A DNA stretch of 64,000 nucleotides from Rhodosorus marinus CCMP1338 (lineage: Eukaryota > Plantae > Rhodophyta), in assembly GCA_029953675.1 (NCBI GenBank), contig JAMWBK010000005.1, positions 2,480,001 through 2,544,000 on the forward strand, written 5' to 3'. The position numbers were made by a program, and so were the translations under genes. Below, one piece after another: positions 9,701 through 64,000 of the stretch; the first letter of the stretch is position 1, and the number at the start of each line of letters is the position of its first letter. Under the pieces are notes generated by a model. That model made no database searches. It had not been told where the DNA came from and saw nothing but the letters and a program-made list of their open reading frames with translations.

Positions 9701-10616
9701 GTGTTGTCGTTCGCAGACCAGCACACACTCGTCAGCAGAAGCTGCGTGTACGATTCTCAAGAACCGGCTCGAGCTCTATGATGGGTCATCTCGACGTTAA
9801 CCGCCTGCTCGATAGAGCGATGCTCCGAGCCGGCTTGCCTATTTCTTTCACGAACGGTTTCAACCAGCTTCCTAGAATGCAACCCGCGCAACCTTCCGCA
9901 CTCGGATATACCTCCAACGCGGAAGTCTATGATTTCGACATGGTGGAGCCAGTTGATGTTGGTGAATTCACACATCGACTATCAGAACAGCTACCTCCAA
10001 CATTCTCCATTCAGGTGCTTCTTAATACTACATGGATCTGGAGTATTGACCCTCTTATGCTAATCTTTTTTCTTTTCTGTGCCGTCCAAAATGGTTCCTC
10101 GTACAGGACGCGGAAGAGATTTCCTTATCGAGCCGATCACCTTCTGCAGCGCTTGAGGAACTAGTTTGGGTAGTCGTGCTTGTATCAGAAACGCTACGCG
10201 ATGAGGACAGTTGGAACAAGTGCATCGAAAACATTCGAAATTCTGGTCCAGTCTTGATCGAGAAGAAAACCAAGCGTACAAAGAAAAAGAAGGAGTTGGA
10301 TCTGCGGGAGCCACTACTCAGCGTTGAACGGGCGACCTCGTCAGATAGCGACCCAGTCCTGACGCACGTGGGTGTGGAAGACTGGGATGACACAAGCTGT
10401 ATCATCAAGTTCAGAACCAAAGTGTCATACGAGATGGCCAACCTCAGTCCAGCATCGTTTGCCAAGATGGTCGAAATCATCTCAGGTTCGGAAGTCACTC
10501 TTAGACACGCACACAAGGCCGATATCGTATTCGCCTCCGTGAAGGAACAAAAACCTCCCATCCGTGAGGAACAAGAAAATCCTATTCTTGAGGAAGAAAA
10601 AACCTCCTGCCCTTAA
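6764..10616 (+). CDS. Radical SAM protein (TIGR03960-like) fused to a TIGR03936/DUF2344-like domain, predicted plastid transit peptide, about 9 exons
   Basis: Motifs KPGRYLGNE, LAYPETYEIGMSN, FGGGQTVTANPEPFAEFFDFFALGDGEE, CTRGCRFC (CxxxCxxC, 8092-8115), TFAPEAGTQRLRDVINKG, KLYFMIGLPGET, FTPKPHTPFQW, LPWDHI, CSFDECSSCGVC, then GHLDVNRLLDRAMLRAGLPISFTNGFN. N-terminus MEAFVGG... is Ser/Arg-rich. Confidence 0.88.
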
Positions 10617-29840: not shown

Positions 29841-30031
29841 CCTACCAAACCCCCTCTGTCTCACTCCTAAACCCAACAAACACAATCAAACTAAACGCGA
29901 CATGACCCTAACAAATCACAAAACACAAGTATTACGAACCTAATCTATTCAAGCTAAACCACATATTTCCAAATAATCAAAGCAAAAGAAGCATCCAGCT
30001 TGCTTGTTCTTAAGAATCCGTCACTTCAACG

Positions 30032-35168: not shown

Positions 35169-36647
35169 TCAGTCGGTGGAAACTGTGCTCACTACAGAGC
35201 CCTCTCCAGAAAATCCTTCCATGCTAGCGGAGCTAAACAAGAATCCAGGAATCGTAGGGTTCTTTGGAAGCTTCTTCTCTCCAGGAAACATTGCTGCCAT
35301 CACCTTCGGAAAACCTCCATCCCAGAATCCCTCCTTTTGAGCCCTGCTGGCAGTCCCTCTACTTCTCTCAAGGCTTGCCAAGGAGTCGCAGGACATTTGC
35401 CTCTCCCGATGTGTGTCACGGACGTCTCTTAGAAAACCTTCATTCCTGCTGTACACGGCTTCCCACGAGACTCCAGAGAAAAATGCATGCTCTCTCACTT
35501 CATCAAAGGACATGCGGTTCGCTCCATCTACATCCATCAAAGATCTGATAAGACTTTGAGCGTCTGCTGGAACATCCTCCGGGAAAAACAATCTTCCGGC
35601 GCTAACCGATTTGAAATACTTCTCCCTGTTCTTTGCGTAATATGGAGTGCGCCCAACAATAAGCATAAATATCAAGCAGCCCAGGGAGTACTTGTCCACG
35701 TTAAATCCGTAGCGCTTGCCCTCCACAACCTCAGGGGCCATATATCCCAGCGTGCCGCAAAAGCTCTGGGTAAGTATCGGGTCCACCCCAATGAATTTGG
35801 ACAGGCCAAAGTCCGCAAGTTTCACGTGTCCTTCCGAGTCCAACAAAATGTTCTCAGGTTTCAAGTCTCTATATACAATTCCGTTCTGGTGCAAATCCTC
35901 CAGAGCCACGACAGTCTCTGCCACGATCTGTTTCAATTGCTTCAAACTAAGACGGTAATTTCTCTTCCGCATGTACTTCTCCAGGTCCCCTCCGGAGCAA
36001 TACTCTGTGACAATGTACAAGTTGTCTTCGCTCTGGAAAGCAGAGTGAAGCTTAACGAAGAAAGGATTTTGTCCCACCAACTCCAGCGTTAGGCGCTCGT
36101 TGATTAGCCTCTTCAAAGCCTTTTCATTGGACATTCTGGACTTTTCCATTACTTTGATGGCCACCTTTGCGCCGGTTGCCTTTTCTACTGCAAGGTAAAC
36201 AGCTCCAGTAGCTCCCTTGCCTATCACTTTCAAGACCTCAAAGTCTTTCATTGATACTGCCTGGAGCTCAGCTGCACACAGAATGCTCTCTCGCCAGCAT
36301 TTATATTTGTCGGCTTCAGGTTTGATCGTGAAGCTCATCTTGTCCGAGTAGAAACACGTGACAGTGCGATTCTTATCGCTATACTCTACCTGGCTAAACT
36401 CAAGCGGAAACGAGAACAGCTCTTCCTTCTTTCCCATCGCCTTCGCGTGAAACACCAAGGTAGTGCACCTCAGCTCCAGAAATACTTGCTCCCAATCCTT
36501 TGCAAAGAAATGCTTCTTGAACGTCGCCAAAACATAGCCACTCAATACAACTGGTTGTCGCAGAACAAGCCTCTGCCACTCCTCTGACATATTCGTGGTT
36601 TTCACCACAGGAGAAACAAACTCTTCAATCATCTTCTTCGACTCCAT
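35169..36647 (-). CDS. AGC-family Ser/Thr kinase with an N-terminal PH-like domain, single exon
   Basis: PH-like SGYV...KDWEQVFLEL...WRESI, then DFEVLKVIGKGATG, VAIK, YRDLKPENILLD, DFGLSK, SFCGTLGYMAPE. Confidence 0.88.
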   Translation of the reverse strand: MESKKMIEEFVSPVVKTTNMSEEWQRLVLRQPVVLSGYVLATFKKHFFAKDWEQVFLELRCTTLVFHAKAMGKKEELFSFPLEFSQVEYSDKNRTVTCFYSDKMSFTIKPEADKYKCWRESILCAAELQAVSMKDFEVLKVIGKGATGAVYLAVEKATGAKVAIKVMEKSRMSNEKALKRLINERLTLELVGQNPFFVKLHSAFQSEDNLYIVTEYCSGGDLEKYMRKRNYRLSLKQLKQIVAETVVALEDLHQNGIVYRDLKPENILLDSEGHVKLADFGLSKFIGVDPILTQSFCGTLGYMAPEVVEGKRYGFNVDKYSLGCLIFMLIVGRTPYYAKNREKYFKSVSAGRLFFPEDVPADAQSLIRSLMDVDGANRMSFDEVREHAFFSGVSWEAVYSRNEGFLRDVRDTHRERQMSCDSLASLERSRGTASRAQKEGFWDGGFPKVMAAMFPGEKKLPKNPTIPGFLFSSASMEGFSGEGSVVSTVSTD

Positions 36648-42513: not shown

Positions 42514-44012
42514 CTAGTCCTTTTTGTCTGCCTCCAGCAAGGCGCTGTAGGTGCCAAGCTTCATTGGAGCGTCCTCCAGTCTGCGACGGTCGGTTGACAT
42601 AAGGATCTCCCTATGCGCTCGCAGCCGGATCGCGTTGATTCGAATGAATCCATCCGCGTCGCTGGGATCGTACCCCTCTGTGGATTCCATGCTAGCAATC
42701 TTCTCACTGTACAACGAGCTCGGAGAGTCCCTAGCAACCGCCATGCAGCTGCCCTTGAAGCAGATTACATCAACCCATCCGTCGATAAGTTCCTGAGACT
42801 TTTCAATTGCAGCGAGAAGGAAATCAGACTCAGGAGAGAACCAGAATCCGTTGTAAACGAGCTCGGAAAACTTCGGAGTCATCATATCCCGAAGTCGCAT
42901 CACTTCTCTGTCCATCGCGATTCCTAGACGATAGAAAGCAAATTCATTAAGTTTGATTCCATGGATTCTTTAATCCCAACTGGCCACGAAATACCCGAAT
43001 AGGAGCTCGTGATGCCTCACCTTCAATGTCGAGATGAGCGCATCTCAGAATAGTCATTCCAGGGGTCTCGTAGACTCCACGGCTCTTGATGCCAACAAAG
43101 CGATTCTCTACAATGTCGATTCTCCCGATTCCATGCTTCTTGGCAATGCGGTTCAGGAACAGGAACAGTTCCAACGGATCATCGTGGCTTTCCTCGGTCT
43201 CCTTACTGAGCACCTTCACAGGCATTCCGTCCCTAAACTCGATTCGAACCACTTCCGGCACATCCGGCCAGTTCTTGTAGTGCTCAGTCTTGGTGTACAT
43301 GTCCTCTTCTGGGGCTACTTTTGGATCCTCCAGCGAACCACTCTCGTAGGAAATATGCATCAAATTCTCGTCCATGGAGAATGGAGGCTTGTCTCCAGAT
43401 GGCATCTCAATACCATTTGCACGAGCGTAGTTTAGAAGATCTGTCCTGCCTTGGAACTGAGTCAGGAAAGTATTGTCCCTCCATGGAGCGATGACCTTGA
43501 TGTGGGGAGCAAGGGCGTAAAAGGTGAGCTCAAATCGGACCTGGTCATTTCCCTTGCCAGTTGCTCCATGAGAAACAAATTCAGCACCTATGAGATTCCC
43601 AAGTAAGCACCAGTGAGAGTTAGCATGATGGATCGTACCGAGGAGAAAAAGTTGAAATCGAAATGCTTGTCTTGGAGATCAACCAACCTTCCTTTGCAGC
43701 AATCTGTACTTGTCGCCTGGCGATGCACGGCCTCGCTAGTGAAGTACCCAAAAGGTATCTACCCTCATACAGAGCATTGGACTGCACCGCCGGGAAGATG
43801 AAGTCAGTAACAAACTCCTTCTTCAAATCCTCCACATACACCGCGGACGCCCCGAGGGCCTTGGCCTTTGCTTCAGCCTTTGCGAAATCATCATCCTGGC
43901 CGACATCCGCAATGTAGCATATAACATCATAACCCTGTTCCTGCAGCCATTTCAAAATCACAGAGGTGTCTAAACCTCCAGAATACGCCAACACTACCTT
44001 CCCACGAGACAT
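42514..44012 (-). CDS. ASS1: Argininosuccinate synthase (animal/fungal-like cytosolic type), 3 exons
   Basis: [90 protein letters not shown]. No transit peptide. Confidence 0.96.
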
Positions 44013-45585: not shown

Positions 45586-47594
45586 ATGTCGTTTTCTGTC
45601 AAGCAGAAACAGAAGGCCATTCTCCGAGCTTTCTTTCGGAACGGAGGAGGGCAATGGAAGGTTTTGGTAGTAGACAAGAGGTCTAGTGAAATTGTGAGCG
45701 AGCTTTTCCGGGGAGAGGAATTGAGAAGGGAAGGAATCACAGTGTCGATTCCGCTTGATTCAAAGCGATCAGACAAGCTGGAATCGACGACAGGGCTCTA
45801 CCTGGTCGCTTCAAGTGCCGCCAACACAAAGCTGATAGCGGAAGATGCAAGAAACGAAATCCTCCAGAAGATGCACATATGTTTCCTATCAGATCCAGCA
45901 CCAATAGAGCAGCTCGTGGATTCAGTGATGAATCCGAAGCCCCCGAAATCCCTGCGTATCTCCGAGATCGTTACAGCCAGCTCGGACTTTCTCTGTCAAG
46001 GCGATAATCTTTTTTCACTGACTTCCCACACACACGCTCTGAAGCCCGAGACGCTCGCGCATGGCCTCACCTGTGTGCTTAGCATGCTTGGCGTGGTACC
46101 GATCATCCGAGCGGAGAAAGGAGGCGTGGCAGAGCAAGTTGGTGAAGTCCTCGCCGACCGGCTGCGTGCTGAGCTCTACATGGGCAAAATTGTTCAGAGG
46201 TCCTTGATATCGGTGAGAGGGTTTCATCCTGCCAATCTACTCCCCTACCAGAGCTCACATCTTTGGCTGAATGAATCACTTCCTCGTCGATTCCGTTGAT
46301 GTCTCACAGAGACCTCTGTTGGTCTTGACGGACAGAAGGAATAACTTATCTACGGCTCTCCGCCACCCATGGACGTATCGAGCGATGCTCTTCGATGTTC
46401 TCGGCCTAAAAGCGTCATCAGTGGAAGTCACAGTCCGAGACAAAGGAACGGACCGAAGTATCAAGTACAATCTGGACGAGGATGCCGATGAATTCTGGAG
46501 AAAGCATTCGACGAGCTCATTCCCAGAGGTTGCGTCTGCTATTGAGGCAGAGCTGAAAACTTACCTCGAAGAAGTCGCCGAGGTGAACAAACTCGGCTCC
46601 GACGTCTCTTCAGAGATTGCGTCGCTTCCTGATCTCGCGAAGCGTAAGGAGATGATCGACATGCACATGAACATTGCTACAGCTCTTCTGGACGAGATAA
46701 AAAGCCGGGGTCTGGATGAACTCTACCGGATAGAGGAGGACGCTGAGGCCGGTGTTGTGGATTGGAACGCAGTTATGTCAGTGATTAAGTCAGACCGTGG
46801 GACGAAAGAGGACAAGCTCAGATTGTTCCTAGTCTGCTTTCTGTCGGGTCCACCCATCGGACAGGTATTGGACTGATTCCGAATGCATACCCGAAGGTCC
46901 AACGGAAGTCGGTGGTTCTATCTCTGAGTCTGCAGTGTGTCTCTGACTCTATCGTCACCATTTTTTTGTAGGCGGAACTCGACGAGTACAGGCAGGCCTT
47001 GGAGGCCGCTGGCTGCGAATCTAGTCCAATCGAATATGCTTTGCCTTTGAAAGGGCTGGCGAAATCAGTGCCCCCCCCAGCCAAGTCTGACACGAGGAGA
47101 CTCGGCCTCATGGTGTCTGGACTTGTACAGCAGGGCAAGGCCAACCTCAAGAAAGGCGTAGCAGAGGTCGCTCAGAACTTTAACAAACTTATGACTCTGT
47201 CCAGGGCAAATGCAATGCCCTTGACTCGAATCGTGGACAGCTTTGTTGAGCTCAAAGGGGGATTCGACAACTCGTGAGCCGACCCCGCCGTATAAAGCTC
47301 TCGTCTTATCCGTCTCCGCACTATCATCCCAATGTCAAATCTGAAGACGAAGCCGCGCATTTACGTTTGTGCCCCAGGTTCACTTATCACGATCCTAAGG
47401 TTAAGTCGGGCGCAGTTGAGAACGGTCCACGCAACCTGATGCCGTTTCAAGATGCGATCGCCTTCGTGGTTGGGGGAGGAAACTATATCGAATACGAGAA
47501 TTTGATGGAGCATTTGCATGGCCGCAGTGTTGTCTACGGAGCGTCCTCACTCCTTGGAGGCTCCCAATTTTTAGGAAGCCTTAGCGATCCATAG
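45586..47594 (+). CDS. SLY1: Sec1/Munc18-family protein Sly1, multi-exon
   Basis: SVKQKQKAIL...WKVLVVD...LRREGITV, GVVPIIRA, RPLLVLTDR..NLSTALRHPWTYRAMLFDVL, IDMHMNIATALLDEIKSR, AIAFVVGGGNYIEYENL. Confidence 0.92.
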
Positions 47595-50428: not shown

Positions 50429-53026
50429 ATGGGGAATGTAGCTGAACCACACATGCAGTTGCCGCTTACGGTAACGAAGGGAACGAGCATTATGCTGGGG
50501 GACCTGTACACTGTCCCCAGCAGTGCTGAGGAGAGCAAGGCCAACATTATGAAGGCGTTAAAGGGCGGGGAGGTGGCTGGGGGACTTGGATGTCAGCACG
50601 TCACCACTGAAATTGACGATAAGGACGCAAAGACGCCTGACTTGTGGGTATCAAGGCATCCAGCGCAAATTAGGCTTACAGGAAAGCATCCTTTCAATGC
50701 CGAGCCACCGATTAAGCTCCTCCTGGATCAGGGCTTTTTCACCCCGCCGTCTGTCCATTACATTCGAAACCACGGAAAAGCAACGAAGGACATCAGCTGG
50801 GAGACACACAAGTTGAAGATTAATGGCCTCGTTGACCAGGAGCTCGAGATTTCCATGGACGAGCTGGCTTCGCTGCCGAGCGTGACTCTGCCAGTGACTC
50901 TCGTCTGCGCCGGCAATAGGCGTAAGGAGCAGAACATGACGAAGCAGACGATTGGCTTCAGTTGGGGTCCTTGTGCGGTCGCCACCCATTTGTGGACAGG
51001 TGTGCGATTGCGCGACCTTCTGCTGAAGGCTGGGATCAGGATGAACAAGGCGAGGCATGTGTGTTTCGTTGGAGTCGAGAAAGAGGGCTTGCCGAACGGA
51101 ACCTACGGCACATCTATTGACCTTGCCACTGCGATGGATCCTTTCGGCGAGGTTATCATTGCGTACGAGCAGAACGGAATGAGGTTGACGACTGACCATG
51201 GTTTCCCCGTGAGGGTTATCATCCCAGGCTGGATTGGTGGTCGTATGGTGAAGTGGCTGGAGCACATCACAGTGCAGGATGAGCCTTCAGATAACTTTTA
51301 CCACTTCTTCGACAACAGAATCATGCCTCCACATGTGGATGCTGAGCTTGCCAAGAAGGAGGGTTGGTGGTACAAGCCGGAGTACTTGTTCAATCAGCTG
51401 AATATCAACTCCGCTATCGGATCGCCGGATCACGATGAGATCCTTGAGCTCACCAAGCCCTCTGACTACACGATGAGAGGATATGCCTACTCAGGAGGCG
51501 GTAGGAAGATCACGCGTGTGGAGGTTTCCTTCGATGGAGGCAAGGCCTGGGAGCTCTGTGATGTGACTTACCCAGAAGAGGAGTACTCCCACACTCCCCA
51601 GTTCGGCAAGTACTACTGCTGGTGCTTCTGGACTTTGAAGGTGAACACGTCCAAGTTCTTGGAGTGCGGTATGGGATACGGGGAACTGTGCTGCCGTGCA
51701 TGGGATGAAGCCAACAACGCGCAACCTGCTACCCTGACGTGGAACTTGATGGGAATGGGTAACAACCCACACTTCCGTGTCAAAATCCACCCGGAGACGA
51801 CCGAGAACGGCTTTAACCTGCGGTTCGAACATCCCACAGTTGCCGGGCCAACCAAGGGTGGTTGGATGGACCCTATAGATGCACCCCCTGCTGTGGTGGA
51901 GAAGAAAGAGGAAAAGAAAGTAGAATCGAAAGGACAAGATTCTTCGAAGAAGTACTTCAAATGGTCCGAGATCAAGAAGCACGACAACGACGACTCTGCA
52001 TGGATTGTCGTGCACGACAAAGTGTATGACTGTACGCCTTTCCTCAAGGACCACCCTGGAGGCAGCGCCAGTATCACGATGAATGCTGGAGCGGACGCGA
52101 CTGATGAATTTGATGCTATTCACTCTACCAAGGCGAAGGAAATGCTCGCGGACTACTACATCGGAGAATTGGATGAGGAAGAGCATAAGGTTGAGGACAC
52201 TACCGAGAAGAAGGCTGAAGTGAAATCGGCGGAGCTCGTCGCTCTGAACCCGAAGAAGCGTGTCGACTTTGCGCTTGTGCAAAAGGACGTGATCAACAGG
52301 AACACTCGTAGGTTCCGATTCGCTCTGCAGTCGAAGGATCACGTTCTTGGACTGCCGGTTGGTTACCACATGCTTGTTAGTGGAATGGTGAACGGCAAGC
52401 TGACCATGCGTGCGTACACTCCAACCAGCTCGAATGATGATGTTGGGTATTTCGACCTTGTCGTGAAGGTGTACTTCGCGAACGAGCACCCGAAGTTCCC
52501 TGAAGGTGGCATTCTCTCGCAACATTTGGATTCGCTGAAGCTGGGTGACACGATCGGAGTGAAGGGTCCACTCGGACATTTCGAGTACAAGGGAAATGGC
52601 AAGATTGTTGTGCACGGAAAGGAGAAGACGAAGACGAAGCTTGGGTTCATCTGCGGAGGAACGGGACTGACGCCGGCCTACCAAGTGATCAAGGCGGTTC
52701 TCAAGGACAAAACGGACAGGACAGAAGTGTCTCTCTTGTACGCGAACGTCACTCCCTCCGATATCCTTCTGCGAGAGGAGCTTGACCAGCTCGCGAAGGA
52801 GCACGATAACTTCCACTTGTGGTACACCGTCGACAGGACCGAAAACGGTGAGAAGTGGGATTACAGCACTGGCTTCATCAATGAGGATTTGATTAAAAAA
52901 GCGCTGCCGGCTCCGGGAGACGACTCATACATTGGCATTTGTGGACCACCGCCGATGATCAAGTTCGCCTGCCTACCCAACTTGGAGAAGATCGGATTTG
53001 CCTCAGATTCATACGTGCAGTTTTAA
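50429..53026 (+). CDS. NIA1: Assimilatory nitrate reductase (Moco, dimerisation, cytochrome b5, FAD and NAD(P)H domains), intronless
   Basis: LTGKHPFNAEPP, TLVCAGNRRKEQN, GWIGGRMVKWL, WNLMGMGNN, HPGG heme motif, RAYTPTS, GFICGGTGLTP, CGPPPMI. The first in-frame ATG is at 50429; the ORF-track start at 50393 is a non-ATG codon. Confidence 0.98.
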   Translation: MGNVAEPHMQLPLTVTKGTSIMLGDLYTVPSSAEESKANIMKALKGGEVAGGLGCQHVTTEIDDKDAKTPDLWVSRHPAQIRLTGKHPFNAEPPIKLLLDQGFFTPPSVHYIRNHGKATKDISWETHKLKINGLVDQELEISMDELASLPSVTLPVTLVCAGNRRKEQNMTKQTIGFSWGPCAVATHLWTGVRLRDLLLKAGIRMNKARHVCFVGVEKEGLPNGTYGTSIDLATAMDPFGEVIIAYEQNGMRLTTDHGFPVRVIIPGWIGGRMVKWLEHITVQDEPSDNFYHFFDNRIMPPHVDAELAKKEGWWYKPEYLFNQLNINSAIGSPDHDEILELTKPSDYTMRGYAYSGGGRKITRVEVSFDGGKAWELCDVTYPEEEYSHTPQFGKYYCWCFWTLKVNTSKFLECGMGYGELCCRAWDEANNAQPATLTWNLMGMGNNPHFRVKIHPETTENGFNLRFEHPTVAGPTKGGWMDPIDAPPAVVEKKEEKKVESKGQDSSKKYFKWSEIKKHDNDDSAWIVVHDKVYDCTPFLKDHPGGSASITMNAGADATDEFDAIHSTKAKEMLADYYIGELDEEEHKVEDTTEKKAEVKSAELVALNPKKRVDFALVQKDVINRNTRRFRFALQSKDHVLGLPVGYHMLVSGMVNGKLTMRAYTPTSSNDDVGYFDLVVKVYFANEHPKFPEGGILSQHLDSLKLGDTIGVKGPLGHFEYKGNGKIVVHGKEKTKTKLGFICGGTGLTPAYQVIKAVLKDKTDRTEVSLLYANVTPSDILLREELDQLAKEHDNFHLWYTVDRTENGEKWDYSTGFINEDLIKKALPAPGDDSYIGICGPPPMIKFACLPNLEKIGFASDSYVQF

Positions 53027-55730
53027 CTCTTTTAGATGCGGAAATTTCGTGGAATTTAACTGATAGTTCATCAGAGTAACATTATATGTAATAAAAAGGA
53101 AGCCAAGCAATTCGTTGCAAGTACAAATGAAGCTAAATAAAATAATTCCTTGAGAGATCATCCCCTACCCCGATATCCTCCTGAGGCCAGATCGCAGCCG
53201 TAACCCACAAAACAACACGCGGTGCATCGAATCCAGGAAAACTCTCTCTCCTCATAACGACAGCGGAAGCGTCCACGCAAGGCCTTCATGAGAAAATCAC
53301 TTCGTAGGAACTGTTCAGGTAGGAAATTTCGTTCAATTTCCTAACTGGAGCTTGAACGAAAGCAGGCCCGGTAACTTTATTCTGCATGGTACGGCGCGGG
53401 AATTATCAGAAACGGTAATGCATGCAAGAGAACAGGATGCCAAAAAAGGAATGGGTCCGAAAACTGCCCTTCTAGTAGAATCGAGAGTTTGGCTGCGAGC
53501 GAATGGGAGCACATTCCCAAGCAATCGAAAACGCTTATGTGAAAATCTGCAACAGCCACAGAAGGTACTCTTGCAACATCAAAAACCGAGATATTAGTAG
53601 AAACAGAAAGTCTGATGCGTCTCACGCTGCACACGTTTAAACAACTTTTTGTTTTAATTTCGCCTCTTGCGGGATCCTTACGCTCTGGTGAAAGTCAGGA
53701 AACGAGGACCCAGTGAATTTTTTTCAAGCCTTAACTTCAATGTCCGTAAGAATTTCTCACGTTCCAATACATGACGTTCACGATTAGGCCTACCATGCGG
53801 ATGAAGGTACCAAGGGGATGGACATCTTGAAGACTCATTTCTCTTCCCTTTCCTTTGGTTTTGGCTTGGGGCCTCGCGAAAGTGTCTTGATGGGTTCGAA
53901 GTCGTATACCGTTCACAGTTGCGATAACCAGACCAGCCGAGGACAGTCTTATACACACTAACGTGGACAGCTGAAAGAAAAGCAAGTTCTGGAAAGAAAA
54001 GAAGCACTTTTGACTCCCCTTTCCCCTGTCCAAGGTAAGGACCACCCGCCGGAGGTTGTTAATTTTCCAGTAAACGAAAGATCAGAAAGAAGCAAGGGGC
54101 GGAAACTTAGTCCAAATTGAACCGAACACGTATGACACTCAATCCCTAATGTCTAAACGCCAACCCACCTCTCATCGGGTATATATCCGTTAACCGTCTC
54201 CTCACCACTGTCATTGGTGTACAAAAACAAAAATTATACCGAGCCACCGGAGAGGCACCACACCATCCCCTCAGCCTTAATTTTTCACCAAACAAAAACG
54301 TCTGATGGTGCGACTCGCGCGGAGTTCACCAGCCTCGAAATGCTCGACTTGTTTTGTCAAGCATCACCTCGGGGGAATCCACCCCCAACGTTTTGTTCTT
54401 TCAATTTCCGTTCCCAAAACCCTCAGTTCACGCGTGCTTTATCTCACCAACGTCTACATCCAAACCCAACCCAAACCAGCTTTTTCCCATGTTTTCGCGG
54501 AATATCCTCATTCAAGTTGACGCCAGCATCCACGTCAGTTTTAGCGCAGGCCAAATGATGTCAACAAATAATTAACAAAAAAAGCCATTCCCAACATCAT
54601 CAAAAATCTACTTCTATAGTTCCCAAATCATTCATAATTTTATTCCAATTCACACACCCTTTAAAAAAAGGGAACGGAGCTTAACCTGTTGAGCAATTTG
54701 TTCTCAAAACTGCAGGGGGAGTCTGCTACGGCAAGTTTTGGTCCGTGGACAAATCTTACCCCTAGTAACATCTAGTTCATCTTTTAAAAATATATATTAA
54801 TTAATAATAATACGAAACTTTTTGTTTGTCCACCTAGCCCCTATCATATTGGTTCATACTTCGTTTGACCCCCCAAACGGTGGCGGCATTTAGCACGATA
54901 TCAAAGCCGACCCCTTGAAGAATTTATTTTTGTGGTATTTATTGAATAACATTTCTTTTTTGTAACTAGGGAGGTCGCTTACTGAAGAATTTAAGGGGGA
55001 GGTGGATTTATTCAATCAGAAACTTGCGCGAGGTGGTAACCAGTTTCGGTCATATGGACTGTTCTACCTTGGAAAACGTGAGGGTCGGACAACTGGTAAA
55101 AAAATCTGAATAATAGAACAAAAATGAGAGCGCCTTTGAGTCACCTATCTTTAGCCAATAGTTGTCCGTAGCGTTTACTTTTTTTTGGTAAAAAGAGAGC
55201 CACCTATTGAGTTCCCAACAATGGCGGCGCCATATCCTTTGATTTATATTGAAAAAAGGATGTAACCGAAGGAGGCGAGAGTGAGCCTGAATGTGTTCGA
55301 TTCGATTCTCACTCTTTAGGGTAAGCGCTTTGGTCCAAAAAAACCTTGTCAATGAGAACACAGACACTTTACGTGCAAATCGCCTAAGGGGTCCAATTTA
55401 CGCCTTCAATTTTACACCCCCCCTCCTATTTATTTTTGAGCCGTTTAATATTACGGATTTAATATATTTGGTGAAGTATAGGGGAGGAAAAGTTGGTTTC
55501 GACTTATGCATCGGATAAAAGAACAATAGGGGTTGGATCGAGATTTTGGTATTGGTCAATGAAAGCGGAATGTTTTCTTGGTCTTCGTTTGTGAGGTGGA
55601 TTTCAGGCATTTGCTTTATTTGGGAAGCGAGTTGCCGTGGGACGGCATTGAGGATGGGTTTTGACTGTTTTCTACCAAGAGAGAAGATCGAGTTGTGCGT
55701 AGTCAAGATTTCAGCTGAAAATCAAGGTCC

Positions 55731-55752
55731 TGGATTACGCCATGTCGAAAGG
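55731..55752 (+). promoter_or_regulatory. Conserved non-coding block upstream of NRT2 copy A
   Basis: TGGATTACGCCATGTCGAAAGG, 21/22 identical to 58862-58883 although the surrounding sequence does not align. Confidence 0.65.
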
Positions 55753-55940
55753 TTTGTTTGTTTCATCAGTCCGCACAAGAAGCTCAGCTTGACAAGATTT
55801 GGTGAGCTGTGAATGCGTAGCGCAGGTGAGTATTTGCGGATTAATATCCCCAAGCTAAGCAATCGTCTCGCGCAAAGGATATGCGACGGCTGGGCGTTTG
55901 ACCGGTTGTGCCCTGTAGTCAGGATGTTGGGGTGAGAAGG

Positions 55941-55950
55941 TTATATATAT
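55941..55950 (+). promoter_or_regulatory. Candidate TATA box of NRT2-A
   Basis: TTATATATAT, conserved in copy B (59274-59283). Confidence 0.65.
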
Positions 55951-56059
55951 TGCAGGTGTATAGTCTGATTCTCGTCAGATAGTGTGCAAGCTGCGGAGGA
56001 GAATAAGCTTTTAGTTTGAACAAAGCCTGAGTCACATCTGTAGTAGCTGTGGAGAAGAA

Positions 56060-57568
56060 ATGGCGGACGTTGACAATACGCCCGTGATGGAGGAGACATT
56101 CGAGACGACTGAGGAGCCGGTGAATATGGAGGGAGCTGCCGGTGGCGCGAAGTTTTTGGACCCGGAGACGGGAGAACCGATGTACAAGTGGCCTGTTGAT
56201 GAGAAGCACAGGTGCAAGGTGCTGAAGCCGTGGAGGTTCGACCGACCACACCACCGTGCGTTCTTCTACGCGTGGTCGTCTTTCTTCTGTGCGTTCTTCG
56301 GATGGTTTGCGCTGTCACCGTTGCTGGTGAACATTGGAAAGTTCTCGCCGGACATTGGAATCAGTGAGAAGGAGGACCGTGTGACGTCGAACATCATCGG
56401 CGTGGCTGGAACGATTCTGATGCGATTCATCATTGGACCTGTTGCGGATCGGTGGGGTCCGCGGTGGGCCCAGGCTGGAGTACTGTGCATTTTCTCGATC
56501 CCGGCTTACCTTGTTGGTACTGCGCAGAACTTTGCGATGTTCTGTACGGCTCGATTCTTCATTGGAATGCTTGGCGGGACTTTTGTGGTGACTCAGTACT
56601 GGACGTCGATCATGTTCGCAAAGAACATTGTTGGATCTGCGAACGCGACGTCGGCGGGATGGGGAAACCTTGGGGGAGGTGTTACGAACGCGCTGATGCC
56701 TCAGTTCGTAAACTTGATGGAGGCTTTTGGACTGGATTACAACATGGCGTGGAGAGTTGCGATGGTGATCCCGGCGACGTTCACGCTTGTGATTGGAATT
56801 CTGTTGTTCTTCTTCGCGGACGATTGCCCTGACGGGAACTATCGGTTCCTGATCATGTCTGGACAGAAGCACGCGACGAACCCGTGGGTGTCCTTCGGAC
56901 GTGCTGCGCTGAACCCGAGATCATGGGTGCTTCACTTGACGTATGCGACTTGCTTCGGAGTGGAGCTGGTGATGAACGGGAACCTTGCGTCGTACTTCCA
57001 GACGTCGTTTGGACTTGATGAGGGAACAGCTGGACTGATTGCGGCACTTTTCGGTCTGATGAATCTGTTCGCGCGGTCGTTGGGAGGAATTACGTCGGAT
57101 TTTGGATCATCACGATGGGGAATGACTGGAAGACTTATTGTGTTCTTCCTGACCGAGATCATGGAGGGACTGATGCTTTTGACGTTCTCGAGGATGACTG
57201 TGCTGGGAGCTGCGATCCCTATGTTGATTCTGTTCTCGATTTTCGTGCAGATGGCTGAGGGAGCTACATTCGGAGTTGTACCGTTCGTGGACCCGAGGTA
57301 CACTGGAGGAATCTCTGGAATTGTGGGTGCTGGCGGAAACGTTGGTGCGGTGCTTCTGAACCTGATCATCAGGAACGTGTCGCCTACGAGCGATGCGTTC
57401 CTGTACTTGTCGTTTGTTGTGCTGGGCGTCTCGTTCTTCGTGCTTCTGCTTATCTGGCCGTTCAAGATCGAGGACAGCATGGACGGACCGGAGCAGCCGG
57501 CGAAGGTTATTGTTGAGGAAAGCGATGAGGAAGTTGCTGAAGTTCGCGTCAGTGACGCTTCCGAGTAG
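56060..57568 (+). CDS. NRT2: High-affinity nitrate/nitrite transporter NRT2 (MFS, NNP family), copy A, intronless
   Basis: RPHHRAFFYAW, nitrate signature SAGWGNLGGG, NLFARSLGG, QMAEGATFGVVPFV, GIVGAGGNVG, about 12 hydrophobic segments. Confidence 0.98.
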   Translation: MADVDNTPVMEETFETTEEPVNMEGAAGGAKFLDPETGEPMYKWPVDEKHRCKVLKPWRFDRPHHRAFFYAWSSFFCAFFGWFALSPLLVNIGKFSPDIGISEKEDRVTSNIIGVAGTILMRFIIGPVADRWGPRWAQAGVLCIFSIPAYLVGTAQNFAMFCTARFFIGMLGGTFVVTQYWTSIMFAKNIVGSANATSAGWGNLGGGVTNALMPQFVNLMEAFGLDYNMAWRVAMVIPATFTLVIGILLFFFADDCPDGNYRFLIMSGQKHATNPWVSFGRAALNPRSWVLHLTYATCFGVELVMNGNLASYFQTSFGLDEGTAGLIAALFGLMNLFARSLGGITSDFGSSRWGMTGRLIVFFLTEIMEGLMLLTFSRMTVLGAAIPMLILFSIFVQMAEGATFGVVPFVDPRYTGGISGIVGAGGNVGAVLLNLIIRNVSPTSDAFLYLSFVVLGVSFFVLLLIWPFKIEDSMDGPEQPAKVIVEESDEEVAEVRVSDASE

Positions 57569-58861
57569 GAAGTGTGCACTTGCATGCTATTGATTGATGC
57601 TAGAATCGCACGCGATGGAAGTGCTATAGTAAAATTTTTATAATATTTGTATCTCAACTGCAGAAGTTGCCACTACCAGAGAAGCTGTTATCCTCCTCCC
57701 TGTCGTCCCCGCCTTGTATAGAACTGTCACTGAGAATTCCAGGTTGCAAACTAGGGAAAGCTTTTGCGTGTGGTGTACATCTAGTGCTTGTCTCCAGAGG
57801 GGACCCTAAGTCTTCCCTTTTTCGCTACGAATGCGTTGCTGCTAGTAAGTCGATATCCTTCTCAAGCGCAAATGCGAAATGGGAAAGGAAGTGGTGGCCG
57901 ACACGAAATGCTATTGGGTTGCACAGTCACTTCAAAACAAATACGACTTCCCCGTCATAACAGGCACTGATTGGACTTGATTCAAGGCTGACTGGTTTGG
58001 CATTCAGCTCCCACAGCAGCAGCAGTGCATCAGAAAGCCCTGGGAGGAAAAGCCTCCCAAAACCTGAGCCGAACAGCATCACAAGGAAAATCAACCTGTA
58101 TCCGAGTTTCATCGTCGAGCGTGCTCGAGTCGCATACCTCAGCACCATACGCCGCAGAACATGACAAACAGTAGAATCGCCACAGCTACTTCATTGAGAA
58201 AAGCCAGCAAAAACGCGAATCCAACTATCTCACCATCCGCAATGGACGAACGGAGGAGATTGGTCTTGTTCCGGTCATTGGAATTCTGCCAAAGCAAAAA
58301 GGGGATTTATGTCTCGCGAAAGTTGCTACGCTCGCAGAAGGTTGCCATATCCTCATGATGTTCCTAGCCGCATAAAAAGCTCGCCCGACATACGCTCCAG
58401 TCCAACACAGGCAACACAAGAGCCTTTCCCCCATCGGAGTTTCGGTTCTGTTGGAACACCTACCCCTTCCCCCCCCCCCGCGCGTCAAACTAAGCCAACA
58501 ACTTATCATCCAATAATCCCGGTGTTCAACCCCTCTTCCCAAACTAATTTTCAAACTAACCAACCGATTTTCTTCAAAAAAACTTCAAAAACAATTCCAG
58601 AAAACATACCCTACACGACCTCTACAGGGGTAGTCTCATATGCCCTCTTTCATTCACCAATTTTTGATAATCTTAGGGGTAGAACAACATCATCACCGTA
58701 CCCAGTAGTACTCTTTCCGTGTCCCAGATAAAACTATTCTTCTTCTCTTTTTTAATTGTTCCTCAATCCGCTGAGAGATGAAGGTTCTTTTTTTATGGTA
58801 GTAATACAGACGATTGCATTCGGATACGAACTGCATGATTTTCGTTGAAATTTAATTGGTA

Positions 58862-58883
58862 TGGATTACGCCATGTCGCAAGG
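58862..58883 (+). promoter_or_regulatory. Conserved non-coding block upstream of NRT2 copy B
   Basis: TGGATTACGCCATGTCGCAAGG, matching 55731-55752. Confidence 0.65.
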
Positions 58884-59273
58884 TGTGGTTTCACCAGGTT
58901 ACTTAGATGGCGAGAGGAATTTTTTGTTTTGGGGGGGGGGTTGGGGGGATGGGTTCCACGTGTTTTTGTACTTTTTAACCCCCTTTTGGCTTTTGTGGAA
59001 AAATGTGGATTGACTTTTTAATGTGCAAAACGGTGCCGTGCATTAGGAAGCTGAGGAAAAGAGAATGTGTCGCTTGCGAGGCTAGCATTCCGAGTTTTTG
59101 GAATGTAGGAAAAAACCAGCGTACTTCTTTATCCATTGAGAAAGCATACGGTCTTCACAAACGCGAGATATCCGTTATACGGGCTCAGTTCTCTTCGGAC
59201 TGACGCAAAGGGTATGTGCCGGTTGGGCGTTTGATCGGCTGTGCCCTGTGGCCAGGATTTTGGGGTGAGAAGG

Positions 59274-59283
59274 TTATATATAT
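59274..59283 (+). promoter_or_regulatory. Candidate TATA box of NRT2-B
   Basis: TTATATATAT, conserved with copy A. Confidence 0.65.
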
Positions 59284-59417
59284 TGCCAAGCGGACGCGAG
59301 AGGGAGTCTGCAGGTGTATGGTCTGATCCTCGTCAGAAAGTGCTCAAGCTGCAGAGGAGAATAAGCTTTTAGTTTGAACAAAGCCTGAGTCACATCTGTA
59401 GTAGCTGTGGAGAAGAA

Positions 59418-60926
59418 ATGGCGGACGTTGACAATACGCCCGTGATGGAGGAGACATTCGAGACGACTGAGGAGCCGGTGAATATGGAGGGAGCTGCCGG
59501 TGGCGCGAAGTTTTTGGACCCGGAGACGGGAGAACCGATGTACAAGTGGCCTGTTGATGAGAAGCACAGGTGCAAGGTGCTGAAGCCGTGGAGGTTCGAC
59601 CGACCACACCACCGTGCGTTCTTCTACGCGTGGTCGTCTTTCTTCTGTGCGTTCTTCGGATGGTTTGCGCTGTCACCGTTGCTGGTGAACATTGGAAAGT
59701 TCTCGCCGGACATTGGAATCAGTGAGAAGGAGGACCGTGTGACGTCGAACATCATCGGCGTGGCTGGAACGATTCTGATGCGATTCATCATTGGACCTGT
59801 TGCGGATCGGTGGGGTCCGCGGTGGGCCCAGGCTGGAGTACTGTGCATTTTCTCGATCCCGGCTTACCTTGTTGGTACTGCGCAGAACTTTGCGATGTTC
59901 TGTACGGCTCGATTCTTCATTGGAATGCTTGGCGGGACTTTTGTGGTGACTCAGTACTGGACGTCGATCATGTTCGCAAAGAACATTGTTGGATCTGCGA
60001 ACGCGACGTCGGCGGGATGGGGAAACCTTGGGGGAGGTGTTACGAACGCGCTGATGCCTCAGTTCGTAAACTTGATGGAGGCTTTTGGACTGGATTACAA
60101 CATGGCGTGGAGAGTTGCGATGGTGATCCCGGCGACGTTCACGCTTGTGATTGGAATTCTGTTGTTCTTCTTCGCGGACGATTGCCCTGACGGGAACTAT
60201 CGGTTCCTGATCATGTCTGGACAGAAGCACGCGACGAACCCGTGGGTGTCCTTCGGACGTGCTGCGCTGAACCCGAGATCATGGGTGCTTCACTTGACGT
60301 ATGCGACTTGCTTCGGAGTGGAGCTGGTGATGAACGGGAACCTTGCGTCGTACTTCCAGACGTCGTTTGGACTTGATGAGGGAACAGCTGGACTGATTGC
60401 GGCACTTTTCGGTCTGATGAATCTGTTCGCGCGGTCGTTGGGAGGAATTACGTCGGATTTTGGATCATCACGATGGGGAATGACTGGAAGACTTATTGTG
60501 TTCTTCCTGACCGAGATCATGGAGGGACTGATGCTTTTGACGTTCTCGAGGATGACTGTGCTGGGAGCTGCGATCCCTATGTTGATTCTGTTCTCGATTT
60601 TCGTGCAGATGGCTGAGGGAGCTACATTCGGAGTTGTACCGTTCGTGGACCCGAGGTACACTGGAGGAATCTCTGGAATTGTGGGTGCTGGCGGAAACGT
60701 TGGTGCGGTGCTTCTGAACCTGATCATCAGGAACGTGTCGCCTACGAGCGATGCGTTCCTGTACTTGTCGTTTGTTGTGCTGGGCGTCTCGTTCTTCGTG
60801 CTTCTGCTTATCTGGCCGTTCAAGATCGAGGACAGCATGGACGGACCGGAGCAGCCGGCGAAGGTTATTGTTGAGGAAAGCGATGAGGAAGTTGCTGAAG
60901 TTCGCGTCAGTGACGCTGCCGAGTAG
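59418..60926 (+). CDS. NRT2: High-affinity nitrate/nitrite transporter NRT2, copy B, intronless
   Basis: Protein identical to copy A except residue 501 (Ser TCC versus Ala GCC). Confidence 0.98.
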   Translation: MADVDNTPVMEETFETTEEPVNMEGAAGGAKFLDPETGEPMYKWPVDEKHRCKVLKPWRFDRPHHRAFFYAWSSFFCAFFGWFALSPLLVNIGKFSPDIGISEKEDRVTSNIIGVAGTILMRFIIGPVADRWGPRWAQAGVLCIFSIPAYLVGTAQNFAMFCTARFFIGMLGGTFVVTQYWTSIMFAKNIVGSANATSAGWGNLGGGVTNALMPQFVNLMEAFGLDYNMAWRVAMVIPATFTLVIGILLFFFADDCPDGNYRFLIMSGQKHATNPWVSFGRAALNPRSWVLHLTYATCFGVELVMNGNLASYFQTSFGLDEGTAGLIAALFGLMNLFARSLGGITSDFGSSRWGMTGRLIVFFLTEIMEGLMLLTFSRMTVLGAAIPMLILFSIFVQMAEGATFGVVPFVDPRYTGGISGIVGAGGNVGAVLLNLIIRNVSPTSDAFLYLSFVVLGVSFFVLLLIWPFKIEDSMDGPEQPAKVIVEESDEEVAEVRVSDAAE

Positions 60927-62435
60927 GAAGTATGGATTTACATGCTTCGAATTGATGTTAGAATCGGACAATAATGCTGTGGTTAAGTGTTTAATATTAT
61001 GTCTTGCGAACGGACGACTTGAGGAAATAAAACTCCCCGTCACAAGAATCTAAATTCCAATATGAAGTTTGTGCAACTCCACGCGAAGGCCGTGTAGCTA
61101 TCGTAGCTACTGTTTCGGAGTTGTTCAGTTTTCCCGATAGAAAATCCAGAACACCAGGAAGGTTTCGCTCGTACAGGGTCTCTCTTCTTTATGTCCCCAA
61201 CGATTTTCAGTCCCTTGGCGCTGGTCCTGTGCAGTGCGAAAACTAAGGGTAGCAAAACGACAGAAACCTGCTAAATTGCCTGAAAAATCCAAATCCGCGT
61301 TGGCTAAACAGGAACTAGGAGCAAGAACTGCGGACGGTTGGGCCAAACTCTGCGTCATCACTTGCATGCGGGGTTGCCCCCCTGCGAAGGTCTCACCGTC
61401 TCCCAAGGCCACGGATTTTAGGAACTGTCTTAATCGATGGCATATATCCCCCGGCATCAGTGCGCAGATGGGTCTTGGCTAGGAAAGAAGTATTGATTGG
61501 TCTGAAAATCGCGTACTCACCTAATGCATCCGAAAATTCGGTTTTTCTTGCTTGCAAACCTCACCACACACGTTTCCCAAATTTTATCGATAGCAACGAC
61601 CAGCCAACAATCCATCCGCAAAAGTCGACGCAACGGATTACCCCAGGTAAGACAGTCTGTCCAATCTAGGACAAACTGTCCCATCGGCAAAATGCTTTGC
61701 AAGCCTTAGAAATCGGAAATAATTTCGTCCTCCCCTACTCGATTGCGCCAACGTGAGCTCTAAGCATTCGATGATTGGTCCTTTCCATCGATCTGCTGGC
61801 ATGTTTGCGCTAGAGAGTTCGCTGGTAAATAATTTCTACTTTTCAATATATTCTAAGCCGTGCAAGATATCCCAGGGGCTGAACCTGGATTCATTTTCAC
61901 GAATTATGGTACTTTGGAAAAAATAATGATGGGTCATCGAGCTTGACCGCATGATATAAACCCCCCCCCGCCTATCAGGATTTTTCCTTGCTGAAAATAT
62001 TTCATTTTGGACGGTTTCGATTTTTTTTTTTTTCTTGCTCGACTCACATCCCCAAGATGTCATCCGATGGAAACGGGGTAACACGTCCCGACACTAGACT
62101 ACCCTCTACCAAAAACTGATTAAAAGAGGAAACACCAGCGATTGCGACAGCCCTCTCGGTGAACAATTGAATTTCTAAACAATTCGTGAAGATGTCGTAT
62201 AGCTTTTTTCTTCCGTTCAGAATTTTGTTTTGTTTTGTTTAAATTTTTTTCACACCCTCTTAAAATTGGCCCTAAAAACGAAGGATCAGCTGATCCAAAT
62301 GTTCCCATTTTGCTTGCCCCAATAAAAATTTGGAAATTCAAAATGTGTGTAGATTGGGATATCATTGTCGAAGAGGTTGGGAAGGATGAATTTTCCATGA
62401 CGAAATGGGGTTTTGGGGGGGTTTGTACACTGGAG

Positions 62436-62442
62436 TATATAA
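62436..62442 (+). promoter_or_regulatory. Candidate TATA box of nitrite reductase
   Basis: TATATAA about 170 nt upstream of the ATG, inside a G/T-rich leader. Confidence 0.45.
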
Positions 62443-62611
62443 GCGAACAGACTTGGTCTGGATGAGGAGGAGGAGTCGGTGGGGCGATAGGAAAGGAGGA
62501 GCTCAGGATTAGATTCCTCAAGGATAAGAGTCTGTTTTTTTGGAAAAGGGGGTGGGGGTGTGGGTGTAGGTACTGCTGTGGAATTTACTTTATTGAACCT
62601 TTTTTGTCAGG

Positions 62612-64000
62612 ATGATTGGGTTTGTAGGAGGACAGGTGCCGGCGGGGTACAGCGGTCATGGGAAACGGGTCGTTTCTGGACGCTGTAGGAGTATACGGAA
62701 GGTTTCGATGGAGCCTGTAGAGAAGATTGGCGTTTCTGATGTATCGGGACTGAATAGCATCCCTGAAGAGATCTGGGAGAGGGCACTGGGCGGGAGCAAG
62801 TTTGAGAAGGTTAAGGCCGAGAAGGATGGTAGTGAAATGTGGAAGGAAATCTACGTATATGCGGAGAAAGTAAGGAATGGGGAGATTACATATCAGGATA
62901 TTGACTCGGATGACTTGAACATCAGGTACAAGTGGGCAGGCCTCTTCCATCGGCCGAAGGCCACTCCTGGAAGGTTCATGAGCAGGCTGAAGGTCCCGAA
63001 TGGCATCCTCAACTCTGAACAGTTGAGATTTTTCGGTGAATTTATCGGAAGATACGGTGATGATGGCTGCGGTGATATCACGACGAGGATGAACATTCAA
63101 TTGCGGGGTATTGTCGTAGAGGATGCTGGAGACCTAGTCGACGGCCTGAATGCTGTGGGTCTGACCAACATCCAGAGTGGCATGGACAACGTTAGAAATC
63201 TTGTCGGATCTCCAATTGCAGGCATCGATCCGCACGAGATGTTTGACACGAGAGAAATCTGCAAGGACATTGACAACTACATCACGGGTGATAGGAAGGG
63301 TAACAAGGAAATCACCAACCTTCCCCGAAAATTCAACATCTGTGTGTCTGGATCACGAGACGACTTTGCGCACACTCACATCAACGACATTGGACTGAAG
63401 CCAATGAAGAATGAGGAAGGTGTCATGGGATTCAATGTCGACATTGGTGGATACTTCTCCTCAAAGAGGGCGGCCCATTCAATTTCAATGGATGTGTGGG
63501 TCCACCCGGATGACGTCGTCGCTTTCTGCAGGGCAATGCTTCTTGTGTTCCGAGACAACGGCGAACGTAAGGATCGGCAAAAGTCTAGAATGATGTGGCT
63601 TGTGGAGAAGTGGGGTTTGGAGAAATTCCGTTCTACCGTGGAGGAAAGGATGGGAAAGACACTGGCCCGGGAGGCAAAGGCTGGACCTGAGTTCGACACC
63701 CCTTTCCCACGTCGGGACGTGCTGGGCGTGCACCCACAGAAACAGGTTAGCATTTCTCAGAAAGATGTTCAAAGCCGTGTTCTATGGTGTTCTCATCAAT
63801 CTTTCTGTTGTGCTTTTGGCCGGACTCGCAGGAGGGATATTCTTGGGTTGGGTGCCGGGTTCCAGTTGGACGGCTTTTTGCCAAAGATTTCTTCGAAATG
63901 GCTGATGTGGCGGACAAATACTCGGACGGTGAAATGAGACTGACTGTAGAACAAGGCATAATCTTCCCCAACGTGAAGAATGAGGAACTGGATACTATCC
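62612..64000 (+). CDS. NII1: Ferredoxin-nitrite reductase with plastid transit peptide; intron 63746-63831; truncated by the window end
   Basis: KFEKVKAEKDG, RYKWAGLFHR, FMSRLKVPNG, DITTRMNIQLRG, QSGMDNVRN, NLPRKFNICVSG, ERKDRQKSRMMWL, LGVHPQKQ|EGYSWVGCRVPVGRL...MRLTVEQ. Confidence 0.96.

Follow-up and report, generated by a model that had tools for sequence, protein, structure and literature searches.

Clusters of nitrate-assimilation genes are a textbook example of metabolic gene clustering in eukaryotes, and whether those of algae have a single or a repeated origin is an open question (PMC6400420). A nitrate assimilation pathway (NAP) cluster is defined by Ocana-Pallares et al. (2019; PMC6400420) as at least two of the genes nrt2, euknr and nir lying close together on one genomic fragment. 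We describe here such a cluster from the red alga Rhodosorus marinus CCMP1338 (Stylonematophyceae), in which genes for nitrate reductase (NR), two NRT2 nitrate transporters and ferredoxin-dependent nitrite reductase (Fd-NiR, or NiR) follow one another on the nuclear contig JAMWBK010000005.1 (3.19 Mb) of assembly GCA_029953675.1. The DNA analysed, called the window below, is a stretch of 64,000 nucleotides, and its coordinates are used throughout; contig coordinates are obtained by adding 2,480,000. A further piece of the same contig, locus L001, spans 49418-70926 in window coordinates; its sequence agrees exactly with that of the window in the overlap, and it extends the view to 70,926.

The cluster of Chlamydomonas reinhardtii has the order NII1-NRT2.2-NRT2.1-NAR2-NIA1-NAR1 (PMC4620153). 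It resembles the Rhodosorus cluster in covering the complete pathway, in having a canonical Fd-NiR, in placing tandem NRT2 genes between the NiR and NR genes, and in being made up of separate transcription units. It differs in that it also holds NAR2 and NAR1 and is regulated by NIT2 (RWP-RK), and its NRT2 copies are diverged paralogues that have not been homogenised. The fungal and oomycete cluster fHANT-AC (nrt2, euknr and NAD(P)H-nir; PMC2040219) likewise brings together a transporter and two reductases, which in fHANT-AC are co-regulated, but its nitrite reductase is a cytosolic NAD(P)H enzyme of other origin, its hosts are heterotrophs, and spread by horizontal transfer has been proposed for it.

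For red algae, the 2019 survey covered four species, and lists ‘nr,nrt2’ for Cyanidioschyzon merolae, ‘nir-fd,nrt2’ for Galdieria sulphuraria, no cluster for Chondrus and a question mark for Pyropia. It left open whether the red and green algal clusters have a single origin or several, and regarded multiple independent events in Rhodophyta as possible (PMC6400420). In C. merolae, nitrate induces CmNRT, CmNR and CmNIR, and this induction depends on CmMYB1 (PMC8962646; PMC4620153). The Rhodosorus genome paper deals with mitochondrial minicircles and does not mention nitrate (PMC10250338), and the searchable literature on Stylonematophyceae or Rhodosorus together with nitrate contains nothing on a cluster. 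Nitrate clusters are thus well known, as had been acknowledged in an earlier interpretation of this window (the sequence-only reading), and that reading was also right to regard the Rhodosorus version as a new example, apparently undescribed, given that the survey lists only partial red-algal clusters and that the genome paper is silent on nitrate. Within the searchable literature and the loci that we examined, Rhodosorus is the first red alga to have the complete canonical set of NR, NRT2 and Fd-NiR in a single uninterrupted block.

The order of the genes is NR, NRT2a, NRT2b, Fd-NiR, all on the + strand and within a span of 14.2 kb. All three of the gene types that define a NAP cluster therefore occur together with no intervening gene, and since a transporter, a reductase for nitrate and one for nitrite are all present with their motifs intact, the pathway is complete. 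The intergenic distances are 3.0 kb (NR to NRT2a), 1.85 kb (NRT2a to NRT2b) and 1.7 kb (NRT2b to NiR). With a genome size of 31.2 Mb (PMC10250338), the probability of three given loci falling inside 14.2 kb is about 6e-7, and it is concluded that the clustering of the loci is significant and beyond chance. Three to four units would share one orientation by chance with a probability of 1/4 to 1/8, and co-orientation alone is not significant. The cluster is approximately 640 kb from the contig end, and so is not subtelomeric, and its GC content is the same as that of the rest of the window. We consider it about 85% probable that this is a genuine and complete nuclear NAP cluster, which is most simply a well-preserved older red-algal arrangement, and in which the NRT2 pair is old and has been homogenised.

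The coding sequences of NR, NRT2a and NRT2b are all uninterrupted. The R. marinus genome has 24,821 introns in 8,392 genes, or about three per gene (PMC10250338), and each of the four neighbours that are fully contained in the sequence (argininosuccinate synthase, Sec1, NiR and a PBP-like gene, discussed below) has introns totalling 190-310 bp. The sequence-only reading had described NR and both NRT2 genes as intronless among intron-bearing neighbours, which is borne out. It had also described the four genes as co-oriented with nothing recognisable between them, and this agrees with the domain and structure matches, with the gene calls, and with the empty spacers.

NR (50429-53026, + strand) belongs to the EUKNR type of assimilatory NAD(P)H nitrate reductase, and its intronless coding sequence specifies 865 amino acids. 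Five Pfam domains are found in the expected order, each with E<=1e-27, namely Oxidored_molyb, Mo-co_dimer, Cyt-b5, FAD_binding_6 and NAD_binding_1, and these make up the full EUKNR fusion of Mo-pterin, dimerisation, Cyt-b5, FAD and NAD(P)H domains. The protein matches the PDB structures 2BIH (Mo domain, 9.5e-110) and 1CNF (FAD fragment, 2.3e-89), and is 67% identical to the NR of Porphyridium. The cofactor motifs are intact: CAGNRR, with the Mo-ligand Cys (C160), HPGG at 542 (haem), RAYTP at 661 (FAD) and CGPPPM at 838 (NAD(P)H). Enzymes of this type are cytosolic, and reduce nitrate to nitrite with NAD(P)H via FAD, haem b5 and the molybdenum cofactor (Moco).

NRT2a (56060-57568) and NRT2b (59418-60926), both on the + strand, are intronless genes for predicted high-affinity nitrate/nitrite transporters of the NNP family, each of 502 amino acids, and their coding sequences are one nucleotide apart. 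Both proteins match the Pfam family MFS_1. They also match the NarK-family model TIGR00886 with E=1.1e-83 over profile positions 1-368 of 368. The score is 281 bits; the curated cut-off of the model, which NCBI chose for annotating prokaryotic genomes, is higher, at 311.7. Both NNP signatures are found in both copies, AGWGNLG at 199 and GAGGNVG at 423. There was no match to PDB sequences at 1e-5, and the family assignment is therefore based on TIGR00886 and the motifs: the MFS fold, a full-length match to the NarK/NNP model, and the two signatures are all present. Among named relatives, the closest are NRT2 proteins of the red algae Bangiopsis, Purpureofilum, Erythrolobus and Porphyridium. Transporters of this family import nitrate.

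The Fd-NiR gene (62612-64598, + strand) has four exons and three introns, encodes 577 amino acids, and reaches its stop codon 598 bp beyond the window edge. Exon 1 (62612-63745) is followed by intron 1 (63746-63831), which is 86 bp long with GT-AG borders. Exon 2 (63832-64167) is cut by the window edge at 64000, and introns 2 and 3 occupy 64168-64242 and 64390-64481, so that exon 3 ends at 64389 and exon 4 runs to the stop at 64598. The 441-codon open reading frame (ORF) seen in the window at 62612-63937 reads through into intron 1. The splice model was guided by P0130, a 94%-identical transcript-derived protein of another Rhodosorus strain, and its 577-residue product agrees with the deposited annotation.

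The NiR protein contains the Pfam domains NIR_SIR and NIR_SIR_ferr in the duplicated architecture of the family. It matches the spinach Fd-NiR structure 2AKJ with E=1.5e-167 (residues 60-573), compared with 5e-26 for maize sulfite reductase (SiR). The cysteines of the [4Fe-4S]-sirohaem centre align with the spinach motifs as CTGSQFC (457) and CPNSC (498), both encoded beyond the window edge. These comparisons identify it as a canonical ferredoxin-type NiR, not an SiR-like enzyme of the Cyanidiales kind; the sequence-only reading had called it canonical, and the two E-values bear this out. The spinach-alignable region is preceded by an N-terminal extension of about 60 residues encoded in exon 1 (MIGFVGG...), with Phe at position 4. 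Such an extension is consistent with the transit peptides of the red lineage, and NiR is putatively imported into the plastid. Plastid Fd-NiR reduces nitrite to ammonium with ferredoxin at a [4Fe-4S]-siroheme centre. The nearest relatives of the protein are other red algae in the expected order, and it is 60% identical to the NiR of Pyropia and 44-45% to that of Galdieria. The contig of a relative, L007, has the same tail-to-tail boundary between NiR and a PBP-like gene and the same NiR intron positions; it starts 310 bp upstream of NiR, and so is uninformative on linkage to NRT2. As a separate observation, a 769-residue protein from Logan contigs (P0242) is an Fd-NiR homologue that carries a formate/nitrite-transporter domain (PF01226) alongside its NIR_SIR domains, which would make it an algal fusion of NiR with a nitrite channel of the NAR1 kind.

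The three spacers consist of unique sequence. Spacer 1 (53027-55870), between NR and the NRT2a homology region, is about 2.8 kb long with about 43% GC, and has no recognisable gene. Spacer 2 (57609-59203; about 1.6 kb), between the two NRT2 copies, is unrelated to spacers 1 and 3 by self-BLAST, and spacer 3, which includes the NiR promoter region (60967-62611), is also about 1.6 kb. The deposited gene calls place nothing between the four cluster genes, seven ORFs in the spacers have no Pfam match, and the spacers contain no Rfam family at the gathering score, no tRNA, no pseudogene remnant of NR, NRT2 or NiR, and no dispersed repeat. With spacers of 1.7-3.0 kb, the genes would be separate transcription units, each with its own promoter, and not an operon. 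Operon-like co-transcription was considered and rejected on the length of the spacers and because the NRT2 copies have their own TATA-like element.

In the pathway as we envisage it, nitrate would enter the cell via the two NRT2 transporters, be reduced to nitrite by the cytosolic NR, and then be reduced to ammonium by the plastid Fd-NiR. The four genes may be jointly induced by nitrate or when nitrogen is depleted, and repressed by ammonium, as has been demonstrated for the C. merolae genes, where the MYB1 factor mediates the response. NRT2 and NiR transcripts are found in the MMETSP transcriptomes of related strains. A doubled and homogenised NRT2, with nearly identical proximal promoters, would most plausibly provide transporter dosage.

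The two NRT2 proteins are identical at 501 of 502 positions. Over the 1,509 bp of coding sequence there is a single difference, T at 57560 and G at 60918, which changes Ser to Ala (S501A), and there are no silent differences. The longest identical run is 1,564 bp, from 55996 to 57559 in NRT2a (+ strand), which is 100% identical to 59354-60917 in NRT2b. The homology extends over only about 1.74 kb (55871-57608 and 59204-60966), and the remainder of the spacers is unrelated. At its edges the homology is much weaker: the 3' edge is 22% diverged, and the 5' flank or proximal promoter of NRT2a (55871-55995) is about 12% diverged from that of NRT2b (59204-59353), both on the + strand, with a 25-bp indel. 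The element TATATATAT is kept upstream of both copies, at 55942-55950 in NRT2a. In NRT2b a 25-bp insertion (59284-59308) directly follows TATATATAT, so that the element lies about 135 bp ahead of the ATG instead of about 110 bp. Between the two proximal promoters no other difference is as large as this insertion (region 59275-59308), which might alter the relative expression of the two copies.

Had the coding sequences diverged as the flanks have, dozens of silent differences would be expected, which points to gene conversion acting on an older duplication. Data from two other Rhodosorus strains (MMETSP; transcriptome-derived proteins) point the same way. Each of these strains has two NRT2 isoforms, with 0-2 differences in the first 470 positions. 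Within a strain, the isoforms have 0, 0 and 2 differences, compared with 14-19 between strains. The C-terminal tails of the isoforms are distinct and recur across two strains (...VSE or ...VSG, as opposed to ...VSDA[A/S]E). This recurrence implies that the duplication is older than the divergence of the strains, and that the gene bodies evolve in concert. The marks of concerted evolution are therefore all present, namely an identical core, diverged edges, and paralogues that are closer within than between strains (the last from transcript-derived data). From these comparisons the NRT2 pair are seen to be old tandem duplicates whose coding regions have been homogenised by gene conversion, and in CCMP1338 the conversion tract has overwritten the C-terminal tail too. 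The sequence-only reading had noted a doubled transporter. There are indeed two NRT2 genes, but they are not simple twins, being instead an older duplication that has been homogenised, with a 100% identical core and diverged edges.

We turn now to other red algae. Porphyridium purpureum, which represents the closest sequenced class, has NR and NRT2 as a divergent pair (L003, 6297-11581) separated by about 1 kb, which is likely to be a bidirectional promoter. As in Rhodosorus, NR lies immediately 5' of NRT2 and both genes are intronless, and the orthologues are 67% (NR) and 56% (NRT2) identical. The differences are that the pair is divergent, that there is no NiR within 10 kb of it, and that the second NRT2 is not in tandem but 1.5 Mb away.

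In Cyanidium caldarium (L005) an SiR-like gene, pointing towards NR, is followed by a divergent NR and NRT2 with a spacer of 430 bp (9571-10001). The nitrite-reducing protein matches maize SiR with 2e-150 and NiR with only about 1e-24, and so is clearly of the SiR type, in agreement with what has been published for C. merolae (PMC4620153); its identity to the NiR of Rhodosorus is 25%. The Cyanidiales clusters (CmNRT/CmNR/CmSiRB of C. merolae and the Cyanidium locus) thus resemble that of Rhodosorus in having NRT2 beside NR, with a sirohaem nitrite-reducing enzyme within about 7 kb, and differ in the SiR-like enzyme, the divergent NR, the single NRT2 and the much shorter spacers. Rhodosorus does not belong to the Cyanidiales type, which has a nitrite reductase of the SiR clade. 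In Rhodosorus, NR has the same direction as NRT2 and the spacer is 3 kb long; an inversion of NR relative to the layout of Porphyridium and Cyanidium would fit this.

Galdieria sulphuraria (L011, 8428-18325) and G. partita (L010, 8427-18312) share a third arrangement, in which NRT2 and NiR have the same direction, a ferric-reductase-like gene lies between them on the opposite strand, and a gene for a Mo-domain-only protein, also on the opposite strand, follows NiR. As in Rhodosorus, a canonical Fd-NiR is linked to NRT2, co-oriented with it and downstream. In contrast to Rhodosorus, Galdieria has no canonical EUKNR, its single NRT2 contains introns, and opposite-strand flavocytochrome and Mo-domain genes are interleaved. 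The absence of euknr from G. sulphuraria was reported in the 2019 survey (PMC6400420). The extra genes of the Galdieria cluster encode an 854-residue Temptin_C plus ferric-reductase-like flavocytochrome, an Oxidored_molyb-only protein of 319-385 residues, and a CLC channel. Together, the Mo-domain protein and the flavocytochrome might make up a nitrate reductase that is split or of an alternative kind.

NRT2 or NiR was found alone in Gracilariopsis, Hildenbrandia, a florideophyte-like contig and Pyropia vietnamensis. Synteny across Rhodophyta, which had been proposed as a check on the cluster, is thus partial: linkages are retained in Porphyridium, Cyanidium and Galdieria, and the genes are dispersed in florideophytes and Pyropia.

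Rhodosorus holds both of the partial linkages found elsewhere, NR with NRT2 and NRT2 with NiR, and so it is most simply seen as having preserved an older cluster that has been rearranged or dispersed in other lineages. The ancestry of each of the cluster genes is shown by sequence comparison to be red-algal. Several observations weigh against this account. Order and orientation vary among the red-algal clusters, with NR divergent from NRT2 in Porphyridium and Cyanidium, and Galdieria has two unrelated genes interleaved, so that common ancestry is unproven and independent assembly is possible. As to co-regulation, no shared promoter motif emerged, and no k-mer common to all four promoters exceeds the null expectation, a result that argues neither way: the 800-bp regions upstream of NR, NRT2a, NRT2b and NiR share three 8-mers and no 9- or 10-mers, where the null means are 1.5, 0.27 and 0.06. 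For the history of the NRT2 pair, the paired isoforms of the transcriptomes need not be paralogues, and might in principle represent alleles or variants produced by the assembly.

The alternative that survives best is that the cluster was assembled independently in the Rhodosorus lineage, from genes that were dispersed or partly linked, under selection for co-regulation or co-inheritance, so that its likeness to other clusters would be convergent. The differences of order and orientation between lineages would fit this, as would the use in the Cyanidium cluster of a different, SiR-like enzyme. The 2019 survey keeps multiple clustering events in Rhodophyta possible (PMC6400420), and since three gene types allow only three orders, shared adjacency is weak evidence. 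Set against these points, NR is found next to NRT2, on its 5' side, in Stylonematophyceae, Porphyridiophyceae and Cyanidiophyceae alike, NiR is downstream of and co-oriented with NRT2 in both Rhodosorus and Galdieria, and repeated de novo pairing needs more events than retention followed by loss. We therefore regard independent assembly as possible but rather unlikely. As to selected clustering, which the sequence-only reading had taken to be implied by the joining of genes of different origin, the clustering may have been selected.

The remaining alternatives concern the NRT2 pair and the origin of the whole cluster. If the pair were a very recent tandem duplication that had undergone no gene conversion, the identity of the proteins at 501 of 502 positions would be readily explained. 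Duplication of a 3,358-bp unit should, however, have left near-identical spacers and edges, whereas no more than about 1.74 kb is homologous, with edges that are 12-22% diverged around a core that has no silent change at all, and other strains have paralogue pairs that are homogeneous within each strain. We consider this very improbable. It is also highly improbable that the second copy is an assembly artefact, arising from false duplication or a mis-joined haplotype with only one real copy. A 1,564-bp core of 100% identity is the type of repeat that assemblers sometimes mishandle, but each copy has its own diverged edges, they differ by a 25-bp indel and have unrelated spacers, the assembly is long-read and pseudo-chromosomal (PMC10250338), and two other Rhodosorus strains each express two NRT2 isoforms with distinct C-termini.

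Horizontal gain of the whole cluster, whether from a bacterium or from some other eukaryote, has precedents in osmotrophs such as fungi and oomycetes, for which the transfer of entire nitrate clusters has been proposed (PMC2040219; PMC6400420), and would fit with intronless NR and NRT2 genes in an intron-rich genome, but it is scarcely credible, given that the closest relatives of NRT2 and NiR are the red algae Bangiopsis, Purpureofilum, Erythrolobus and Porphyridium, in the order to be expected, that NR is 67% identical to that of Porphyridium, that the cluster has the GC content of its surroundings, and that the three introns of NiR are at positions shared with a relative.

On the deeper origins of the genes, the 2019 survey traced Fd-nir to cyanobacteria and nrt2 to a bacterial donor, not identified but not cyanobacterial, and took euknr to be a fusion of three genes made in eukaryotes (PMC6400420). 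The sequence-only reading had assigned NR and NRT2 to the host and NiR to cyanobacteria. This holds for NiR and for a eukaryotic euknr; NRT2 is not of host origin, being bacterial and non-cyanobacterial according to the survey (PMC6400420).

The cluster ends at NiR. It had been suggested that it may continue past the window edge, where NAR1, Moco or regulator genes might be sought. NiR does run past the edge, finishing at 64598, but there is no further nitrogen gene in the next 6 kb; the sequence to 70,926 holds only a PBP-like gene and a light-harvesting-complex (LHC) gene. More widely, genes for NAR1, NAR2, Moco, sirohaem synthesis or a regulator are absent from the approximately 50 kb upstream of the cluster and from the 6 kb downstream (to 70,926). 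NAR1 and NAR2 have not been found in rhodophyte genomes (reviewed in PMC4620153), so their absence from the cluster is expected.

The PBP-like gene (65065-66302; L001 15648-16885; - strand) lies tail-to-tail with NiR and encodes 348 residues. The protein weakly resembles class-III periplasmic binding proteins (Peripla_BP_2, E=8e-4; PDB 4M7O, iron-binding, E=1e-3), and no link to nitrate was found. The corresponding neighbour in L007 (3944-5114) is 36% identical, with E=8e-55. The LHC gene follows at about 70.1 kb, and the 3.8-kb gene-free stretch between the two contains two tandem-repeat arrays with periods of 69 and 46 bp and about three copies each, at approximately 66706-66893 (L001 17289-17476) and 68605-68746 (L001 19188-19329).

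On the other side, a Sec1-family gene (45586-47594) is immediately upstream of NR, and beyond it, 6.4 kb from NR, is the gene for argininosuccinate synthase (42514-44012, - strand). The latter is an arginine-biosynthesis and nitrogen-metabolism gene, and its proximity to NR is probably coincidental. Further upstream are housekeeping genes, among them an apparently uninterrupted 492-codon ORF for a protein kinase (35169-36647, - strand), and ORF fragments of an FG-nucleoporin (29004-29885, - strand), an ABC-2 transporter (23157-23783, + strand), a phosphofructokinase (14321-15580, - strand), the C-terminus of Mlh1 (12497-13495, + strand) and a WD40 protein (1791-2741, - strand).

The finding does not change the understanding of how the nitrate pathway operates. 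The homogenised NRT2 pair is a clean, small case of gene conversion still at work in the nuclear genome of a red alga, and gives a warning that the age of ‘species-specific duplications’ of NRT2 in gene trees can be badly underestimated. Stylonematophyceae were absent from the sampling of the 2019 survey, and the Rhodosorus cluster is a useful anchor for synteny tests of cluster ancestry. Tentatively, and in our view doubtfully, Rhodosorus may even preserve an ancestral red-algal, possibly early archaeplastidal, arrangement NR-NRT2-NiR, with the transporter central as in Chlamydomonas and Micromonas pusilla, of which the partial clusters would be decay products. If this were true, the choice between one origin and several, which the 2019 survey left open, would be decided in favour of one (PMC6400420).

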